From IMG/VR virus record IMGVR_UViG_3300046005_000547, positions 62,001-126,000 of that record: DNA of 64,000 nt; one strand, given 5' to 3'. How positions within the stretch are numbered: position 1 is the first letter of the stretch; every line of letters begins with the position of its first letter. Below the pieces are notes generated by a model that saw nothing but the letters and a program-made list of their open reading frames with translations, had not been told where the DNA came from and made no database searches. This document shows, piece after piece, positions 3,004-60,437 of the stretch. Position numbers and translations under genes: made by a program.

Positions 3004-3031
3004 TTTCGACATTAAAGATAATCATTATAAT
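3004..3031 (+). promoter_or_regulatory. Phage promoter TTTCGA-N16-TATAAT
   Basis: tttcga at 3004, tataat at 3026 followed by aga. Confidence 0.7.
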
Positions 3032-3069: not shown

Positions 3070-3219
3070 ATGTCAAACAATACACAATTAACATTTGAAC
3101 AATTTTTGAAATACGTTGATGAAGATTTATTGAAAGATCTTGATTACGAAGGAATCACTCTTCGCGAATACTACGACATTGTTGTGACTCAAATGTCTAA
3201 CGAACATTATTATCCCTAA
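3070..3219 (+). CDS. Small hypothetical protein (49 aa, MSNNTQLTFEQFLKY...)
   Basis: Read from the sequence; agga RBS; directly downstream of a promoter. Confidence 0.55.
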   Translation: MSNNTQLTFEQFLKYVDEDLLKDLDYEGITLREYYDIVVTQMSNEHYYP

Positions 3220-3247
3220 ATAATTATAAATTTTATGGAGTAAGAGA

Positions 3248-3610
3248 ATGAACACATTTGAACAATTCAAACAGACGGTGATGGAAGAATTTGCTGGTCG
3301 ATTGAATGAAGAAAAACAAACAAAATTGGTAGTCAAAAAGATTAGTCCTAAATGGTATAGAATCGTTATTGACACAGATAAATGGGATATACCAGAAACC
3401 GTTGTTGATATCCTACAGACTGAACATAAAGAATGGTCTGTATGCTATGGTGAGAAAATGTCATATTCAGTTGGTGAACAATCGCATGATACTCGTAGAT
3501 GGGTATTTGTTAAGTTAAACAATGCCAAAGTTTATGCGTTAGATCTAGCTGCTGCCATTAAAAATGATAAACCTTATCCTTCTATCTTAGACGACAAATA
3601 CGAACTTTAA
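3248..3610 (+). CDS. Internal head protein-like (capsid-targeting leader family, member 1)
   Basis: N-terminus MNTFEQFKQTVMEEFAGRLNE resembles the T4 IP leaders MKTFKEF/MKTYQEF and ends in a gp21-type LxE site; TATAAATT at 3225; terminator downstream. Confidence 0.65.
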   Translation: MNTFEQFKQTVMEEFAGRLNEEKQTKLVVKKISPKWYRIVIDTDKWDIPETVVDILQTEHKEWSVCYGEKMSYSVGEQSHDTRRWVFVKLNNAKVYALDLAAAIKNDKPYPSILDDKYEL

Positions 3611-3616
3611 TTTAAT

Positions 3617-3649
3617 ATCCTGTGAGATGATATGTCTTACGGGATTTTT
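3617..3649 (+). terminator. Rho-independent terminator (ATCC...GGAT-T tract family)
   Basis: atcctgtgaga...tcttacgggat followed by a T-run. Confidence 0.75.
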
Positions 3650-3708
3650 ATGCTAGTAGAATTCTTACTGATAAATAATTTCATCTATTAACATTAAAAT
3701 GTTTAAAC

Positions 3709-5457
3709 ATGACTATTATCAAAGTGAGAAAACTAGACGAAGCGTTTCTATACGTTACGTCAGAATTTGGAATTGAACAAGAAATGTATGAATACTTTTC
3801 ATTCATGTCACCTGGAGCAAAGTTCGATCCAAGAGTGAGGAATCGTCTATGGGATGGTAAAATTAGATTGTATTCTCAATCTAATAAAAAGATTCATGTA
3901 GGATTATTTTCTTACATAGAGAAATTTGCCAGAATAAATGATTATCAAATACAATTAGAAAATGAAATTATTGAACAAGTTGATGTAACATATTCTGATA
4001 TTGAAAGATTTGTTAACAGTTTGAATATACATTCTCGTGGCGTAAAACTTGATGTCAGAGATTATCAGCTTTCTGCTATATATGAATCAATTAAAAACAA
4101 ACGTATAATCTGCGTCTCTCCCACGTCTTGTTTAGACCCAAATACCGAAATTGAAGTTTTATTTGATAATACAAAAAAATCAATAACATTATTAGAACTC
4201 GATTCCCTAGTTAAAAATGGAGTAAATCCAAAAATTAACACCCCTTCTGGTTATGAAAAAATAACAGAAACATATAGAAAATTTGGGAATGGTATAGAAA
4301 TTCACTTCGAAGATAATTCAACACCAATAAAGGCAGCAAATAATCATTTAATGTATTTAAACGATAATTGGATAGATTCAATTGATGTTAAAATAGGAGA
4401 CGATTTTGGTAATAAAAAAGTTACCAAAATCAATAAATTGGAACCACAAGAATGGATAGATTTTTCGATAGATGCAGACCATGAATCATATTTCCATAAT
4501 GATATATTACATCACAATTCTGGAAAATCTGTGATAATATATGCGATTATACGATGGTATATTGAACACAATTTAAAATGTTTAATCATTGTCCCGAGTA
4601 CAATGTTAGTTGACCAGATGTTTGGTGATTTTAAAGATTATTCTTCCCATAATGGTTGGAATGTAGATAAACATTGTAATAAGATTTATTCTGGTCATAA
4701 ATGTCATCTTGATTTAGATTGCGCTATTTCTACATGGCAAACTTTACAGAACATAAAACATCAATTACAATTCTTTGAAAATTTGGATGTTTTAATAGGC
4801 GACGAATCACATCTATACAAAGCTGCTGTTGTAACAAAATTACTAAACAATATGCCAAACACTTCCATCAGAATAGGAACGACTGGTACATTAGATGGAA
4901 AACAAATCTCCGAATTACAATTAACGGGTTTATTTGGTAAAGTGTACAAGGTCATTACGACCAAAGAACTAATGGATGAGAATAGTGTTACTACATTAGA
5001 CATTTCATGTATCCTGTTGAATTATGATTCAGATACAAAGAAGTTATTGACCAAAACCGAATATCAGAAGGAAATTGATTGGTTGGTCCAAAATGATAAA
5101 CGTAACAAATTTATTGTTAATCTAGCTGCGTCTCAACAAGAAACAACTTTGGTGTTATTTCAATATGTTGAGAAACATGGATTACCTCTATACAAAATGT
5201 TAAAGGAAAAATGCCCCGACAGAGAGATTCATTATATTTCAGGATCTGTAGATAATTCCAAACGAGATGAAATTAGGAATTCAATGAATACATCATCTCG
5301 AATGATTAAGATATGGTTCGGTGAATTATACATATCTGTTGGCGAAAACGAAAATGTGTTATTGAGTAACGGTGATTTAATACAATCAAAATATATCAAC
5401 GAGAATCATGATATAGATAACAATTGGATTAAATCAAGAAAATTAAACAAACTATGA
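3709..5457 (+). CDS. uvsW: UvsW-like SF2 DNA/RNA helicase with mini-intein; C-terminal helicase motifs absent
   Basis: WDGKIRLY, RDYQ, Walker A SPTS|SGKS split by the intein, DESH, GTTGT, LVLFQYVEKHG; the ORF ends without motifs V/VI. Confidence 0.85.
   Translation: MTIIKVRKLDEAFLYVTSEFGIEQEMYEYFSFMSPGAKFDPRVRNRLWDGKIRLYSQSNKKIHVGLFSYIEKFARINDYQIQLENEIIEQVDVTYSDIERFVNSLNIHSRGVKLDVRDYQLSAIYESIKNKRIICVSPTSCLDPNTEIEVLFDNTKKSITLLELDSLVKNGVNPKINTPSGYEKITETYRKFGNGIEIHFEDNSTPIKAANNHLMYLNDNWIDSIDVKIGDDFGNKKVTKINKLEPQEWIDFSIDADHESYFHNDILHHNSGKSVIIYAIIRWYIEHNLKCLIIVPSTMLVDQMFGDFKDYSSHNGWNVDKHCNKIYSGHKCHLDLDCAISTWQTLQNIKHQLQFFENLDVLIGDESHLYKAAVVTKLLNNMPNTSIRIGTTGTLDGKQISELQLTGLFGKVYKVITTKELMDENSVTTLDISCILLNYDSDTKKLLTKTEYQKEIDWLVQNDKRNKFIVNLAASQQETTLVLFQYVEKHGLPLYKMLKEKCPDREIHYISGSVDNSKRDEIRNSMNTSSRMIKIWFGELYISVGENENVLLSNGDLIQSKYINENHDIDNNWIKSRKLNKL
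4129..4518 (+). mobile_element. Mini-intein (130 aa) in the UvsW Walker A motif
   Basis: Begins CLDPNTEI, block B AANNH, ends ILHHN followed by Ser; removal restores SPTSSGKS. Confidence 0.9.
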
Positions 5458-5470
5458 AAGGAAAACTAAA

Positions 5471-5752
5471 ATGAGTGCATTCGAACAATTTAAACAAACG
5501 GTGATGGAAGAATTTGCTGGTCGTATAGACGAAAGTAAAATCATGTTTGCTGTGACTGTTGATGGTGATAAGGTTGACGTGAAATCTAAAGATAAAGATT
5601 TCAAAGTTGACGTAAAGGATGTTGAAAATGAAAAAGAAGTTATCGATACGGTCGTTAAATTCTTAGAAAAACAAGGTTATAAAAATGTGAATGGACATCC
5701 AAATACATCTGAAAAAGGTGGAGTCGTTGGTGTCATCCACGTAGAGAAATAA
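5471..5752 (+). CDS. Internal head protein-like (leader family, member 2)
   Basis: MSAFEQFKQTVMEEFAGRIDE is nearly identical in DNA and protein to the 3248 leader, followed by an unrelated body. Confidence 0.65.
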   Translation: MSAFEQFKQTVMEEFAGRIDESKIMFAVTVDGDKVDVKSKDKDFKVDVKDVENEKEVIDTVVKFLEKQGYKNVNGHPNTSEKGGVVGVIHVEK

Positions 5753-5758
5753 ATTAGA

Positions 5759-5790
5759 ATCCCATCCGCTGAAAAGTTGATGGGATTTTT
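5759..5790 (+). terminator. Rho-independent terminator, identical to the one at 10496
   Basis: atcccatccgctgaaaagttgatgggattttt. Confidence 0.8.
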
Positions 5791-5863
5791 ATTGGATAAA
5801 ATTTTTATATCTTAAGATGAAATTCAAAGTATAATAAACATTCATTTTATACAGGAGAAATAT

Positions 5864-6237: not shown

Positions 6238-8538
6238 ATGATTGAACATTTAAAAACAATTGAACAACAATATCAAGTATTAACTGAATTAGAACATATC
6301 AGAAAACGTGTTGGTATGTATGCAGGTAGTCCTGTATTAGAAGAACATGAAGAATTCATCTATTCTATCCAAAACAATAAAATGGAATTACAAACCATTT
6401 CTTATATTCCAGCATTGATTAAGATTATCTCGGAAGGAATTGACAACGTAGTTGATGAACATAACAGAAATCCAAAAAAGATTAACGAATTGAAATTATC
6501 AATTAAAGATAATGAAATCATTATTTCTGATAATGGCGGTATTCCTGTACAAATTCATGCAGATTTCGGTAAATATGTTCCTGAAATTATATTTGGTACA
6601 TTACGTTCTGGTTCTAATTATTCAGATGATGATGCTCAATCCCTGATAGGAACAAATGGATTAGGAGCGAAATTAATTTCTGTTCTAAGTGAATACTTTA
6701 TTGTTGAGACATCTGATGGTTCTAATTATTTCCATCAAGAATATAAAAATGGAATGTCAGAACGTTCTGAACCCGTTATCACTAAATCAAAGAAACATTT
6801 TACAACATTAACATTTAAACCAGATTTAGAATATTTTGGTTTGGAATCATTTGATGAACATCATACATTAAAAATCATTAGACGATTGGTTGATGTTGCC
6901 GCCAATAATCCTTTATTGAAGGTGTATTTCAATGATGAAAAATTCAATGTATCTGCGTTCGATGATTACATTTCATTATATTCAGAAAGTTATGTATATG
7001 ATTCAACTGATGATTGGAAAATTGGTTTGTCTGCGTCTTCTGGTTTCAATCAGACCAGTTTTGTTAATAGTGTAGAAACGTATATGGGTGGAACTCATGT
7101 TAATTACGTTGTAAATCAGATTACAGAGAAACTCAGAGCTTACGTCAAAAAGAAACATAAGATTGATATTAAACCATCTGATATCAAAAGTCATTTACAT
7201 GTATTTGTTTCATGTAAAATCAATCGACCAAAGTTTTCCAGTCAGACCAAAGAAAACATGATTAGCACTATAACAGATTTTGGTTCATCATGGTCTTGTT
7301 CAGATAAATTCATCAATAAGATTATTACATTGGAAGTTGTACAATCAATTTTGGATTGGGCGGAAGCAAAGGAAAATGCTCTAAAGAATGCAGAATTACG
7401 CAAATTGAATAAATCTGTTGACAAATTGAATCCGGCAAGAGTGGACAAGTTTGAAGACGCTAATGAGAAGAAAGATAGAAGTAAGTGTACAATTTTCCTT
7501 ACAGAGGGTAACTCGGCAATGGGGGCGATAATGTCTGCCAGAGACCCTGAATTACATGGAGCTTTTGCGCTTAAAGGTAAACCATTAAATGTGACGGATA
7601 TTGATGCCAAAAAGTTAATGGAAAATAATGAATTCAAAAGTATTCTAACAATCATGGGGTTGAAACTGGGTGAACAAGTCACACCAATGACTCCATTACG
7701 TTTTGGTAAAATCTGTTTTCTAACGGATGCGGATTGTATTACAGAAGAACATTATGTGTTGACAGAATCTGGCGAAAAACTTATCTCAGATGTTAATCCG
7801 TTAGAAGATAAAGTGTTGACGCATTTGAATCAATATGCAGTAGTGGAATATGTTAACATTAAATCAACAGATGTTGTAATCAGAATCACTTCTGGTAATG
7901 ATATTGTTGAAGGTACACCTGAACATAAACATGTAATCTTTAGAGATGGTTGGGATCTTCCAAAAAAATATATGTTGAAAGAAATTCTACCAACGGATAT
8001 GATAATCAAATATATTGATGGACAACAAATCAATCATCCCATTGATTCTATTGAAACTATCGAAAAAACTATAACAACATATGATTTAACAGTTAAAGGT
8101 CATCATACATTTTATGTTAGACATAAAGATTCTGAAAATTATATCTTAACGCATAATTGTGATGGTTCTCATATCATTGGTCTGTTAATTAACATGTTTC
8201 ATTCATTCTGGCCTGAATTGTTTGAATTAGGATATATCTACAGATTCAGAACCCCATTGATTAAAGTCAATGTTGGTAAAGACGTATTAGAATTCTATGA
8301 TGAAAAAGAGTTTGATGAATGGAAATCCAAGAACACAAAAAAGTTCACATCAAAATACTTCAAAGGATTAGGTACATCCACGGCAAAGGATTTCAAAGGA
8401 TACCTAGCTAATTCCGATAAGAATATGGTACAATATACAATTGATGACATTAAAGATTCAGATTCAATTAAATTGGCATTCTCCAAGAATTCAGATTCAG
8501 CTGATTTACGCAAACAATGGTTAAACATCGAAGGTTAA
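6238..8538 (+). CDS. Type II DNA topoisomerase large subunit (gp39+gp60 fused, GyrB/ParE-like) with mini-intein
   Basis: EHIRKRVGMYAGS, GHKL motifs EGIDN / DNGG / GTNGLGAK, TEGNSA, LKGKPLN, Toprim TDAD|CDGSHI, KYFKGLGTS. Confidence 0.92.
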   Translation: MIEHLKTIEQQYQVLTELEHIRKRVGMYAGSPVLEEHEEFIYSIQNNKMELQTISYIPALIKIISEGIDNVVDEHNRNPKKINELKLSIKDNEIIISDNGGIPVQIHADFGKYVPEIIFGTLRSGSNYSDDDAQSLIGTNGLGAKLISVLSEYFIVETSDGSNYFHQEYKNGMSERSEPVITKSKKHFTTLTFKPDLEYFGLESFDEHHTLKIIRRLVDVAANNPLLKVYFNDEKFNVSAFDDYISLYSESYVYDSTDDWKIGLSASSGFNQTSFVNSVETYMGGTHVNYVVNQITEKLRAYVKKKHKIDIKPSDIKSHLHVFVSCKINRPKFSSQTKENMISTITDFGSSWSCSDKFINKIITLEVVQSILDWAEAKENALKNAELRKLNKSVDKLNPARVDKFEDANEKKDRSKCTIFLTEGNSAMGAIMSARDPELHGAFALKGKPLNVTDIDAKKLMENNEFKSILTIMGLKLGEQVTPMTPLRFGKICFLTDADCITEEHYVLTESGEKLISDVNPLEDKVLTHLNQYAVVEYVNIKSTDVVIRITSGNDIVEGTPEHKHVIFRDGWDLPKKYMLKEILPTDMIIKYIDGQQINHPIDSIETIEKTITTYDLTVKGHHTFYVRHKDSENYILTHNCDGSHIIGLLINMFHSFWPELFELGYIYRFRTPLIKVNVGKDVLEFYDEKEFDEWKSKNTKKFTSKYFKGLGTSTAKDFKGYLANSDKNMVQYTIDDIKDSDSIKLAFSKNSDSADLRKQWLNIEG
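7735..8157 (+). mobile_element. Mini-intein (141 aa) in the topoisomerase Toprim DxDxD motif
   Basis: Begins CITEEH, block B GTPEH, block F TYDLTV, ends LTHN followed by Cys. Confidence 0.9.
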
Positions 8539-9849: not shown

Positions 9850-10013
9850 TGGACAATCGTAATTATTTGTATAAGACAATAGAAGAATGTCAAGAAATTA
9901 GGAGTGATGCTATTGAATATCATAAGTTGAAGAAAGGAATCTTCAGAGGATATTGGAAATGTTATTATTGTTACAATACTATACATGAAGATAGGTTCAA
10001 CGGTTTTATATAA
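9849..10013 (+). CDS. Small hypothetical protein (54 aa, contains CxxC)
   Basis: Read from the sequence; start overlaps the gp52 stop (taatg). Confidence 0.45.
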   Translation: MDNRNYLYKTIEECQEIRSDAIEYHKLKKGIFRGYWKCYYCYNTIHEDRFNGFI

Positions 10014-10016
10014 ATA
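10009..10016 (+). promoter_or_regulatory. T4-type late promoter TATAAATA
   Basis: Exact consensus upstream of an IP-like gene; gp55 and gp33 are present in the window. Confidence 0.6.
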
Positions 10017-10143
10017 AAATTAGAAAGGTCTATCGACGTAATGAGAAATCGTTATAATAGATCTTAGATAAACTACTAAATAAGATTGAATCTTATTTAA
10101 AATCATTTCGTCTTAATTGACGCACAACAAAAGGAAACAAAAC

Positions 10144-10471
10144 ATGAGTACATTTAAAGAATTCCAAGCATTGGTTATGGAAGAATTCTCATCAGTTAAT
10201 GAAGCATTAGAAAACGGTAAATGGAAAGCAGGTAAATGGGTCGAAGATTTATCTATGATAGATAATTCTAAACGTAAAAAAAATTGAAGTTGAAAAAGAA
10301 AAATACACCATCCATATCAAATTGGATAATGGCGAAATCACAAAACAAAAGGTTACAATTCCGTTCGGGACTTCTGTTGCAGATAAAGCGAATTCTATTT
10401 TCCAAACAATTAAACACAATGCCGAAACATGGGGTGCCCCTGCTCCAGTAGAAATTTTAAAAATTGTTTAA
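10144..10471 (+). CDS. Internal head protein-like (leader family, member 3); frameshift in an A8 run at 10276-10283
   Basis: MSTFKEFQALVMEEFSSVNEALE...; removing one A gives a continuous ORF ending ...PVEILKIV; followed by a terminator. Confidence 0.55.
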
Positions 10472-10495
10472 TAAAAACAATCGTATTGTTTTAGA

Positions 10496-10870
10496 ATCCC
10501 ATCCGCTGAAAAGTTGATGGGATTTTTATTGCGTAAAATATACATTCTAAATGATTCTTAAAACATCCATTATTTGTCCGTTAATCCATCTTAATGATAT
10601 ATGTCAATCAACTCTACAGGACTATTTGAATCCATCTTAAAACAACAAATAATTGGACAGGATTTAATGTTAACATCGAATCAATAAATTCACTGTATCG
10701 AGAACATCTTAAAGATTCATTATCGCTATTCTAGACATCGAGTTTGTAAATATCAACATAATAATACTTCTTGACTTTTCCAGCAAATTCCATTATAGTA
10801 GACTATGTCGACGTTTCAGTTAGTGTATATTACTACTTGATTATTCTTTTATATTACTACAAGATTCTTT
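10496..10870 (+). repeat. Dispersed ~470-bp family unit 1 (terminator, conserved boxes, promoter, start motif)
   Basis: catccattatttgtcc, caatcaactctacagg, aatccatcttaaa, TTGACT-N17-TATAGT, agactatgtcgacgtttcagtta and tatattactacaaga are shared with the 41.9-44.1 kb array. Confidence 0.9.
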
Positions 10871-46144: not shown

Positions 46145-46792
46145 TTGACAGAAGAAACAAACCAAGTGACGCCAGAAGAAATTCAAAAACGAGAATATGT
46201 CAACAAGGAAGAATTATACAATTCAATTGTTGAACGTAAGCGACTAATTAAAGAAGCAGAACTTGATGGTAAACCAAAACCAGCGATTACTCGATACCAA
46301 GCAGAATGTATCATTAAGATTGCTCACAAATATGTCAACAGACCTGGATTCTTTAGCTATTCATTTAAAGATGAAATGATTCAAGACGCTATCTTAAATG
46401 GTATCAAGTATTTCGATTCATTCGATCCAGAACGTTCTACTCAACCGTTTTCATATATCACGGCATCCGTTCATAATACATTTGTACAACGTATTTTGAA
46501 GGAACGAAAACAGACTTACGTTAGACAACAATTAATTAAGAATGTTGATTTGTCTTCTATCCTCGAATCAGAAACTGATAATCAAGATATTGTAACAGAA
46601 TATGTTGAAATCATTAAAGGGTATCAACAATCTGATTATTCAGAGTATTATGAAAAGAAGATTAAAGAGAAAGTCGTCAAGGAACATCGAAATGCATTAA
46701 TGGATTTCCTGGATGAACCTAATACAACAATTCAAGAAATCCCTGAATTGGAATTAGATGAATCTGAAATTGAAAAATTATTACAGGAATAA
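46145..46792 (+). CDS. Late-transcription sigma factor (gp55)
   Basis: YVNKEEL, IIKIA..Y..RPGFFSYSFKDEMIQDA, FDPERSTQPFSYIT, FVQRILKERKQ. Confidence 0.9.
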   Translation: MTEETNQVTPEEIQKREYVNKEELYNSIVERKRLIKEAELDGKPKPAITRYQAECIIKIAHKYVNRPGFFSYSFKDEMIQDAILNGIKYFDSFDPERSTQPFSYITASVHNTFVQRILKERKQTYVRQQLIKNVDLSSILESETDNQDIVTEYVEIIKGYQQSDYSEYYEKKIKEKVVKEHRNALMDFLDEPNTTIQEIPELELDESEIEKLLQE

Positions 46793-57960: not shown

Positions 57961-58818
57961 ATGAAAAAATTATTACTAGGAATGATGTTAATTGGTTCAA
58001 TCAATTATGCATCAGCTAATACGGTCAATGGGGTTTATTGGAATCCAACAGATGGTTCTGATTTAACTATTGATGGTGGGTTATTTGAAACCATAGCAGG
58101 ACATGTAGGTGACCATATCGTTGGTTATGGTGAAGTGAACAAATTCAACGGAAGATACCAAAATGAATTTTGTCCTGGATGCGAATTAACATATACATTT
58201 TCTTATCAAATGTTATCGTCTAGTTCCAATGCAGTGACATATGATGGTTCTAATACGTATTTCAAAACATTTGAACAAGTATGGAATGGAACATCTATTG
58301 ATTATATTAACAATTCGTTTTTGATAGGTTCTGGTGATAAACGGTCATTTTTCCCCACTATCAATCCATTAGAATATACATTTACGTTTGGTGATGGTAT
58401 TGTTGAATTTTTTGCCGATTCAACTCCAGATTTCACTGAAAATGCGCCAACACTTGCTTCGGCTTCTGATGGTATTAGTTTCTTGAAATTAAAAAGTAAT
58501 GGATTATTGAGAGGGACTGGATATGATATTTTTAATCCAGGCGCAATTTACGGATCTGGTTCGGGATTCTTGGATGCAGTTTCCGGTTCAGCGTTTGAAT
58601 TTTTCAATACAAATTCAATGAATGGTGCAGATTTACAATTTACGTCATCTTTCCATATCAATAATTCGGCAAGAGAATCTGATTATCTATTGGGAGGAAC
58701 CGTTCATGTAACAGGTGATACGGTCGACGTACCAGAACCTTCTTCTATTCTAATTTTCTTGTCTGGAATCTTAGGGGTGTTCTATTTTGTATCCAATACC
58801 AGAAATATGGTAGCTTAA
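57961..58818 (+). CDS. Secreted PEP-CTERM sorting-domain protein
   Basis: Signal peptide MKKLLLGMMLIGSINYASA; C-terminal VPEPSS + TM helix + short tail with Arg. Confidence 0.85.
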   Translation: MKKLLLGMMLIGSINYASANTVNGVYWNPTDGSDLTIDGGLFETIAGHVGDHIVGYGEVNKFNGRYQNEFCPGCELTYTFSYQMLSSSSNAVTYDGSNTYFKTFEQVWNGTSIDYINNSFLIGSGDKRSFFPTINPLEYTFTFGDGIVEFFADSTPDFTENAPTLASASDGISFLKLKSNGLLRGTGYDIFNPGAIYGSGSGFLDAVSGSAFEFFNTNSMNGADLQFTSSFHINNSARESDYLLGGTVHVTGDTVDVPEPSSILIFLSGILGVFYFVSNTRNMVA

Positions 58819-59361: not shown

Positions 59362-60159
59362 ATGATTGGTGCTGTAATTGGAGACGTAATAGGATCCGTC
59401 TATGAGTTCGATAATGTAAAGACAAAAGAGTTTGAATTATTTCAAAAGGATTCAATATACACAGATGATTCTGTATTAACATTTGCTATAGCAAAATCTA
59501 TCTTGGATGAAGAATCTTATATTGATAATGTAAAGGATTTCGGTAGAAGATATTCGGACGCCGGATATGGTGGTATGTTTAAACAATGGTTGTTCTCCGA
59601 AGACGTTGAACCATATAACAGTTACGGTAATGGTTCGGCAATGCGAGTGTCATCAGTTGGATTCTTATTTGATACCATAGAAGATGTTTTATATCAAGCT
59701 GAATTATCCGCTGCGATTACCCATAATCACCAAGAAGGAATCAAAGGTGCTCAAGCAACTGCTCTTTCGATCTTCTTGGCAAGAACGGGTAATTCTAAGG
59801 AACAAATCAAACATGAAATTGAAACTCGATTTGGATATGATTTAAACAGAACATTGGATGAAATCAGACCAACATATAAATTCAATGAAACATGTCAGAA
59901 GACTGTCCCTGAATCAATCATATCTTTCCTTGAATCGACAGATTTCGAAGATGCCATTAGAAACGCAATTAGTCTAGGTGGAGACAGCGATACATTAGCT
60001 TGTATCTGCGGTGGTATAGCGGAAGCATTTTATGGGGAGATTCCTGATTATATCTTATCGGAAACATTGATTAGATTACCGCAAGAATTTATTGATATTT
60101 TAAATTTATTTGATGATAAAGTGTATAAATACAATAAATCAAATAAGGAATCGCAATGA
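59362..60159 (+). CDS. ADP-ribosylglycohydrolase (DraG/ARH family)
   Basis: GAVIGDVIGS.YE, YTDDS, NSYGNGSAMR, THNH.EG, GGDSDT. Confidence 0.9.
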   Translation: MIGAVIGDVIGSVYEFDNVKTKEFELFQKDSIYTDDSVLTFAIAKSILDEESYIDNVKDFGRRYSDAGYGGMFKQWLFSEDVEPYNSYGNGSAMRVSSVGFLFDTIEDVLYQAELSAAITHNHQEGIKGAQATALSIFLARTGNSKEQIKHEIETRFGYDLNRTLDEIRPTYKFNETCQKTVPESIISFLESTDFEDAIRNAISLGGDSDTLACICGGIAEAFYGEIPDYILSETLIRLPQEFIDILNLFDDKVYKYNKSNKESQ

Positions 60160-60388
60160 AAACATTTAAAGAATTCCATGAATTGGTCATGGAATCACTC
60201 AACCGATTGATGTAGATAAATTGGAAGAAGCTGTTAAGATGACTGACAAATATCTACAATCAACTGTTAAACGATTGATGATTAATCTAACCAAGTTGGA
60301 CCCAACCAATCAAGTTGATTCTGCATCTTATTACAAATTAGCAAAAATGTTAAATGATAACTTAACTGAATTGTTAAGTCGCAAATAA
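60156..60388 (+). CDS. Internal head protein-like (leader family, member 4); apparent 1-nt deletion near 60197
   Basis: MKTFKEFHELVMES, then in another frame QPIDVDKLEEAVKM...LLSRK; late promoter TATAAATA at 60124-60131. Confidence 0.55.
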
Positions 60389-60396
60389 AATGTATT

Positions 60397-60432
60397 AAAA
60401 ATCCCAGAGTGAATTAACGCTCTGGGATTTTT
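60397..60432. terminator. Bidirectional terminator between convergent genes
   Basis: aaaaatcccagag...ctctgggattttt. Confidence 0.8.
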
Positions 60433-60437
60433 ATTGT

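Follow-up and report, generated by a model that had tools for sequence, protein, structure and literature searches.

A distant, uncultured T4-like phage carries a dispersed family of genes that open with one short leader and continue into unrelated cargo sequences, and we conclude that these leader genes probably encode internal proteins, packaged in the head and injected. The genes were found in a window of 64,000 nucleotides, bases 62,001-126,000 of a 234,735-bp virus record (~234.7 kb) with direct terminal repeats and a G+C content of 31.5%, and the analysis covered the whole genome. A sequencing-run search found near-identical sequence in lake-water DNA metagenome runs only. Positions refer to the window unless they are given as genome positions.

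A dispersed gene family shares a short N-terminal leader

The first-pass annotation had described four genes in the window (a, b, c and d; Table 1) with a common leader. All four ORFs open M-x-x-F-x-x-F-x-x-x-V-M-E, their N-termini being MNTFEQFKQTVMEEF (a), MSAFEQFKQTVMEEF (b), MSTFKEFQALVMEEF (c) and MKTFKEFHELVMESL (d). An HMM of the first 14 residues, run on six-frame pieces of the whole genome, gave seven matches at E values of 2e-8 to 2e-6 and one at 0.003, with noise above 0.5. The four leader starts are thus genuine, but the count of four genes was wrong, since c and d are disrupted by frameshifts. Genome-wide, the strict set comprises about nine copies, namely the seven clear matches, the weaker one and a nonsense-mutated remnant (p). 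Six members are intact and three of the nine copies (c, d and p) are broken. Every HMM match begins at the ATG that opens its ORF, so that the leader is the extreme N-terminus of the protein.

Alignment of eight leaders left M1, F4, F7 and V11 as invariant columns, F4 and F7 being present in 8/8. V-M-E occupies residues 11-13 in seven of the eight members, P3 being Val and not Leu or Ile, and is replaced by V-Q-S in member h. A second site follows as (L/I)xE at residues 19-21 in a, b and e and as VNE in c and g, with none in h. The annotation had listed RLNE, RIDE, VNE/ALE and KLEE as the sites of the four window genes; the first three do lie behind their leaders, but the KLEE of d sits in the -1 frame. 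The codons at the invariant residues vary, V11 being encoded by GTA, GTC, GTG or GTT and F4 and F7 by TTT or TTC, and this synonymous variety places the constraint on the protein.

The leader also stands out statistically among the called ORFs. Of these 368, 13 show the N-terminal pattern [KSLNQ][TSAD]F..[FYWI], where 0.31 would be expected (P 2e-17), and [LIV]xE falls inside residues 8-25 in 12 of these 13 proteins, which resemble those with a capsid targeting sequence (CTS-like), compared with 94 of the 355 others (P 2e-6). Looser versions of the leader open six further proteins, including one of 933 aa, a 122-aa GNAT acetyltransferase and proteins of 114-115, 156, 220 and 488 aa. The hydrophobic moment of the leader, a measure of helical amphipathicity, was no better than that of shuffled sequences.

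Remnant p is in frame with a 120-aa ORF and is preceded by a composite of terminator and early promoter; its stop occupies the position held by Phe, Tyr or Trp in its relatives. We considered read-through of this TGA by a suppressor tRNA, which is unlikely as the only tRNA gene in the whole genome is for Met.

Table 1. Positions of the leader genes, their flanking signals and the late sigma factor gene (window positions, except where marked as genome positions)
Feature	Position	Strand	Description
Early promoter, sigma70-like	3004..3031	+	TTTCGA-N16-TATAAT; among the ~24 early-motif copies of the genome; ahead of the 49-aa ORF 3070-3219 that precedes gene a
TAAATAA late-type motif	3217..3223	+	31 nt upstream of the gene a ATG
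Gene a	3248..3610	+	ORF, 120 aa; leader HMM E 5e-7
Terminator after gene a	3619..3650	+	stem-loop and T-run; genome-wide terminator type
Gene b	5471..5752	+	93 aa; leader MSAFEQFKQTVME then RIDE
Terminator after gene b	5758..5792	+	identical to gene c terminator
Gene c promoter block	10031..10083	+	early-type TATCGA-N16-TATAAT (10031-10058) and TAAATAA (10077-10083)
Gene c, first frame	10144..10287	+	leader MSTFKEFQALVME then VNE/ALE; stop after 47 codons
A8 run at gene c frameshift	10276..10283	+	only coding-region A8/T8 run in the genome
Gene c, body	10277..10471	+	+1 frame, 64 codons
Terminator after gene c	10495..10530	+	genome-wide terminator type
gp55-type late sigma factor homologue	46184..46582	+	E 4e-27 vs cyanophage S-WAM1 gp55
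Gene d, leader ORF	60156..60215	+	MKTFKEFHELVMESLNRLM then stop; 19 codons, TAG at 60213-60215
Gene d, body	60182..60388	+	-1 frame, 68 codons; holds KLEE followed by A
Terminator after gene d	60400..60435	.	bidirectional; genome-wide terminator type
Remnant p	genome 136303-135896	-	ATG AAA ACA TTT AAA GAA TGA (MKTFKE-stop), stop at codon 7
Gene g	genome start 136900	-	159 aa; outside window
Gene e	genome start 152208	-	54 aa, acidic; outside window
Gene h	genome start 153753	-	108 aa, weak ParB-like signal; outside window
Gene f	genome start 233690	-	100 aa; outside window

The leader matches the capsid targeting sequence of T4

The internal proteins of T4 carry a capsid targeting sequence, or CTS (Mullaney & Black 1996, reviewed in PMC9026906 and PMC3012670), and we compared the leaders with T4 genes translated from NC_000866. 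T4 IPI opens MKTFKEFTSTTTPVSTITE, while IPII and IPIII open MKTYQEFIAE. Members d and h begin MKTFKEF, the same as IPI over seven residues, and identity to the T4 CTS spans only these ~7 residues. Suppressor analysis of T4 IPIII assigned residues 4 and 7 to targeting and residues 8 and 10 to processing (PMC9026906). The likeness to T4 internal proteins that the annotation had drawn is stronger than first stated, because F4 and F7 are invariant, d matches IPI and homologues of gp21 and gp22 are encoded.

The family and IPI-III have in common the N-terminal M-K/S-T-F/Y-x-E/Q-F, aromatic at positions 4 and 7, small and mutually unrelated mature parts, a dispersed placement in variable regions, and the gp21, gp22 and gp23 genes; a Glu-terminated motif as candidate gp21 site and a combination of putative early and late signals also recall T4. 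The second (L/I/V)xE near residue 20, present in most members, is comparable to I-T-E19 of IPI. In contrast to T4, the leader is longer here, its Glu-terminated motif (V11-M12-E13) coming three residues later than the I-A-E at 8-10, and there are ~9 strict and ~6 looser copies rather than three. The cargos show no similarity to IPI, IPII or IPIII, nor are they notably basic (pI 4.4-9.7), three copies are disrupted, and the capsid protein is nearer to those of T4-like cyanophages than to those of T-evens.

Searched against T4 and three cyanophages, the leader profile found nothing at E<=1 and missed even T4 IPI; as the profile is too short to be sensitive, it was replaced by a regular-expression scan. 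In T4 the pattern picks out exactly IPI, IPII and IPIII together with one spurious ORF, and in cyanophage S-WAM1 it yields one good candidate, an 83-aa protein opening MKTFKQYIGE followed by A.

The genome encodes the head proteins with which such a tag would work. These include a gp21-type prohead protease (Pfam Peptidase_S77, 114 bits; 35% identity to T4 gp21) in which the catalytic His and Ser motifs GELxHP and GVSSRG are kept, a gp22 scaffold homologue with 28% identity to T4 gp22, and a gp23 capsid homologue (470 bits). The latter has FLQE followed by A near residue 44, a position that we take to be comparable to the maturation site of T4 gp23. The capsid protein is nearest to those of T4-like cyanophages (61% amino-acid identity to S-WAM1). 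The core T4-type machinery and this capsid affinity therefore identify the virus as a distant, uncultured T4-like myovirus. A related phage of 249 kb (G002) aligns over 72% of the genome at ~74.5% nucleotide identity. Separately, the portal ORF (genome 46842-49727) is oversized at 961 aa. An ORF at 57961-58818 (+) carries a signal peptide and a PEP-CTERM-like C-terminus (VPEPSS, a hydrophobic stretch and basic residues), which would be unusual in a phage and may be a hint to the host group.

Putative early and late signals precede leader genes

In the annotation, TATAAATA had been taken as a common upstream element. The sites exist, exact at 10009 and 60124 and with one mismatch at 3225 and 5412, but the sequence is not a promoter motif of this phage: it is depleted, with 11 copies in 235 kb against ~40 expected on both strands, and so is not the late promoter motif here. 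TAAATAA is the predicted late-type motif of this genome. Where 5.9 genes would be expected to have it upstream, 38 do, among them those for sheath, tube and scaffold, and its distance to the ATG is usually 25-45 nt. A sigma70-like early motif, TC-TTTCGAT-N15-TTATAAT, occurs in ~24 near-identical copies genome-wide.

TAAATAA precedes a, c, g, i, k and l, with an additional copy at 10011-10017 upstream of c. An early-type promoter precedes the unit containing a as well as c, f and p, of which f and p have the early type only. Genes b, d, e and n come immediately behind other genes, b and n lying in units headed by TAAATAA. T4 internal proteins are abundant both early and late (PMC6071114), and the mix of early and putative late signals fits this timing.

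The same signals bear on a different role for the leader, as a helix that docks onto some other cytoplasmic partner of host or phage, the proteins then being early take-over factors that are never packaged. The sigma70-like promoters ahead of c, f, p and, via the upstream ORF, a are in keeping with such a role, the early abundance of T4 internal proteins has been taken to suggest extra early functions (PMC6071114), and IPIII lacking its CTS functions from the cytoplasm (PMC9391042). We nevertheless think it unlikely. Six of the candidates share TAAATAA with the sheath, tube and scaffold genes and two more are in units that it heads; moreover, both the positions of the determinants and the pattern of Glu sites agree specifically with the T4 CTS, and in T4 the N-terminal pattern identifies, apart from the spurious ORF, nothing but internal proteins.

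Each of the four window genes had also been described as followed by a terminator of one family. Stem-loops with a T-run do follow all four, as well as f and g, but the type (aatccc-loop-gggatttttattg) is strikingly uniform throughout the genome in ~30 copies, one of them after gp23, and is therefore not a mark of the leader family.

Cargos are unrelated and are exchanged behind a constant leader

We found no significant pairwise similarity among the cargo parts, as the annotation had claimed. Pfam and PHROGs gave nothing for cargos a-g and a weak ParB-like signal for h alone, a PDB sequence search with h gave nothing, and a word-indexed protein search with a, g and h returned only the query itself or one relative.

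Gene a provides the clearest view of a cargo. Its leader covers residues 1-21 (nt 3248-3310; MNTFEQFKQTVME then RLNE) and its cargo residues 22-120. An exhaustive HMMER search with protein a yielded 13 credible homologues, which align to residues ~27-118 only; most are stand-alone proteins of 79-116 aa without the leader. Cargo a is thus a member of a small, uncharacterised and mostly leaderless domain family. One homologue (P0007), from a 164-kb phage-like JGI contig (L067) whose other genes include those for a family-B DNA polymerase, PhoH and HSP20, bears a different CTS-like leader, MLSYTEFKNLNE followed by A. One homologue has three tandem copies of the domain, and in one the domain seems to be joined to an N-terminal region bearing a ParB-like motif, although no Pfam family was found in that protein. 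Two further proteins from the search, P0008 (lipocalin repeats) and P0013, look spurious and were set aside. Contig L067 additionally encodes a homologue of AmoC, subunit C of ammonia monooxygenase.

An AlphaFold2 model of protein a built on the homologue alignment reached a pLDDT of 86.8. In the model the leader stands apart as a helix (residues 3-19), and a linker connects it to the remainder, a five-stranded sheet with a C-terminal helix (90-105) packed on it. Foldseek found no match for the model at E<0.001 in the PDB or BFVD, and the ESM Atlas gave sub-threshold leads only, for example Tad6 at 0.77 for a. A likeness to T4 IPI* or another GmrSD inhibitor was therefore not seen, neither as a Pfam or PHROGs family in a-g nor as a Foldseek match for cargo a.

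The leaderless homologues of cargo a, together with a cassette swap at the c locus, bear out the annotated arrangement of a constant leader with a variable cargo. At this locus the early promoter, TAAATAA, 5'UTR and 15 leader codons of G002 are near-identical to those of the present genome (G000). Similarity is lost at codon 16, an unrelated 95-aa cargo follows, and similarity is regained in the terminator, the 3' boundary of the swapped cassette, and beyond. In G002, d, g, i, j, k, m and n all have orthologues, as does e judging by its leader, and amino-acid identity is 48-85% for g, j, k, m and n. Members a, b, c, f and h are missing from G002, some of whose leader genes are its own; turnover of the set is fast.

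Two precedents can be set beside this swap. The IP1 locus of T-even phages is polymorphic according to Repoila et al. 1994 as cited in PMC3012670 (ref 23), with different ORFs in each phage at one locus and the leader and regulatory flanks alone in common. Compared with that citing description only, the present case concerns two uncultured lake phages and has exact boundaries, at codon 16 and in the terminator. PeSL cassettes of T4-like phages combine an early promoter with a stem-loop, and relatives swap genes at such motifs (PMC2839356, PMC4122927). Gene replacement of this type, with break-points in conserved flanks, is seen at the c locus between G000 and G002, but a stem-loop stands right beside the promoter in only 2 of 26 cases of an early promoter here, and the block of homology reaches into the coding leader.

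Such an exchange could also mean that the conserved 5' block (promoter, 5'UTR and ~15 codons) is a linker at the DNA level, serving recombination and an efficient start of translation, and that the peptide has no targeting role. The swap is bounded by this block and the terminator, the leaders of a and b are 93% identical in DNA over 46 nt, the terminators of b and c are identical, and PeSL-mediated shuffling is documented in T4-like phages (PMC2839356, PMC4122927). A DNA linker does not, however, account for invariant residues resting on differing synonymous codons (four for V11, two for F4 and F7), for the same residues in T4 IPI despite a lack of DNA similarity, for the leader being kept by b, d and e, which have no promoter block of their own, or for the enrichment of (L/I/V)xE, and we regard it as quite improbable.

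Gene b starts 13 nt past a gene for the N-terminal part of the UvsW helicase, which appears to be encoded in two distant pieces. The N-part (3709-5457, +) contains UvsW_N and the helicase core, and its P-loop holds an intein-like insert; the C-part (genome ~152000, -) contains the last helicase motifs (..QSIGRGLR..) and lies just downstream of leader gene e, an order also found in G002. On inspection, no obvious split-intein signatures were seen at the break. The topoisomerase large-subunit ORF (6238-8538, +; 766 aa) likewise has an intein-like insertion, with Cys...HNC boundaries.

Three copies of the leader are uncoupled from their cargo

In gene c the reading frame is broken at an A8 run, in gene d a frameshift comes right after the leader, and in p a stop stands at codon 7. 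The breaks in c and d were found with 0 mismatches and 0 gaps in contigs of four runs (X1-X4), three of them near-complete holders from different studies (word depth ~1000x, 18x and 240x), and that in c also in a second IMG/VR contig (G001). An assembly error is ruled out by this agreement, and the breaks are therefore real features of the population consensus, a contig-level statement that leaves room for minority variants. G002 has an intact orthologue of d, 78 aa long, with its leader. The start of gene d is overlapped by an ADP-ribosylglycohydrolase gene (59362-60159, +; PF03747, 114 bits).

Slippage from A7 to A8 is the commonest inactivating mutation in such AT-rich DNA. In G002 the e orthologue (L030, G002 87656..) appears frameshifted at an A8 run and, like gene c, would need one A fewer; the orthologue of the 220-aa CTS-like protein i (G002 119549-120131) appears to lie in three frames, as judged from the assembly alone.

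With three of nine copies disrupted, at least those are not delivered as leader-cargo fusions. Such breaks may reflect plain decay or a way of taking a protein out of the injected set; at the A8 run, expression that depends on slippage is a further candidate. That the family as a whole consists mostly of decaying, non-functional remnants of duplicated genes we hold to be highly improbable. Besides c, d and p in this genome, the e and i orthologues of G002 appear frameshifted and most cargos have no homologues, as decay would predict; but the other six members are unbroken, G002 conserves g, j, k, m and n, cargo a has a confident fold and 13 homologues, and the leader is under constraint at the protein level.

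A probable set of packaged and injected proteins

Together these data support the reading that the leader genes probably encode internal proteins, and we infer scaffold binding, cleavage, presence in the virion, injection and cargo action by analogy with T4. The N-terminal 13-21 residues would act as the CTS, F4 and F7 docking the new protein on the gp22 prohead core. During maturation the gp21-type protease would cut after the Glu of V-M-E13 and, in most members, also at the second (L/I/V)-x-E near residue 20, freeing the cargo in the head. The cargo would then pass with the DNA into the next host cell and act at once, with host defences or the take-over of the host as the most plausible targets. 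Each gene, from promoter through leader and cargo to terminator, would form a self-contained cassette whose cargo is exchanged by recombination anchored in the promoter-leader block and the terminator. In T4, IPI is an inhibitor of GmrSD, and infection of E. coli ECOR17 needs IPIII (PMC3012670, PMC9391042).

Other phages offer partial parallels. The heads of phiKZ, 201phi2-1 and SPN3US contain many internal proteins that undergo gp21-related cleavage after Glu and are ejected (PMC5694885, PMC7411985), but their propeptides are long and lack a common short tag, and they belong to another lineage. T4 Alt is a packaged, gp21-processed ADP-ribosyltransferase. The 933-aa protein k (genome 230365-233166, +, outside the window), which opens MKTFTDIRKQINE, is likewise large with a CTS-like N-terminus and has ADP-ribosyltransferase motifs of PARP type (HG[ST] and G.GIYF; 23.6 bits against a Pfam cut-off of 26.7). 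Its conservation in G002 is 71%, and it may be the functional counterpart of Alt, although its domain is PARP-like (H-Y-E type) and without sequence homology to Alt.

Enzyme-like cargos among the candidates are this PARP-like ADP-ribosyltransferase, the GNAT acetyltransferase and the ParB-like domain. A bolder reading would be an arsenal of ~15 capsid-targeted, injected effectors with fast turnover, some of them enzyme-like, in which the uncoupling of leader and cargo, as by the A8 slippage tract in c, the frameshift behind the leader of d and the early stop in p, is a recurrent switch between injected and not injected rather than mere decay; we consider this rather unlikely.

Diverse internal proteins that share only a CTS have been known in T-even phages since the 1990s (PMC3012670, PMC9026906). 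The concept is unchanged, and the present genes are therefore a new set of members of a known system. What is notable is the distance of the lineage, the unusually large size of the set, the clean cassette swap and the three disrupted copies.

Injected internal proteins are a phage's first responders to host defences. The T4 tag can be recognised, its determinant residues unchanged, in a lineage nearest to the cyanophage-type T4-like phages, and a simple N-terminal pattern can therefore be used to mine uncultured phages for candidate injected effectors. This genome yields ~15 such candidates, together with a natural example of leader-anchored cargo swapping.
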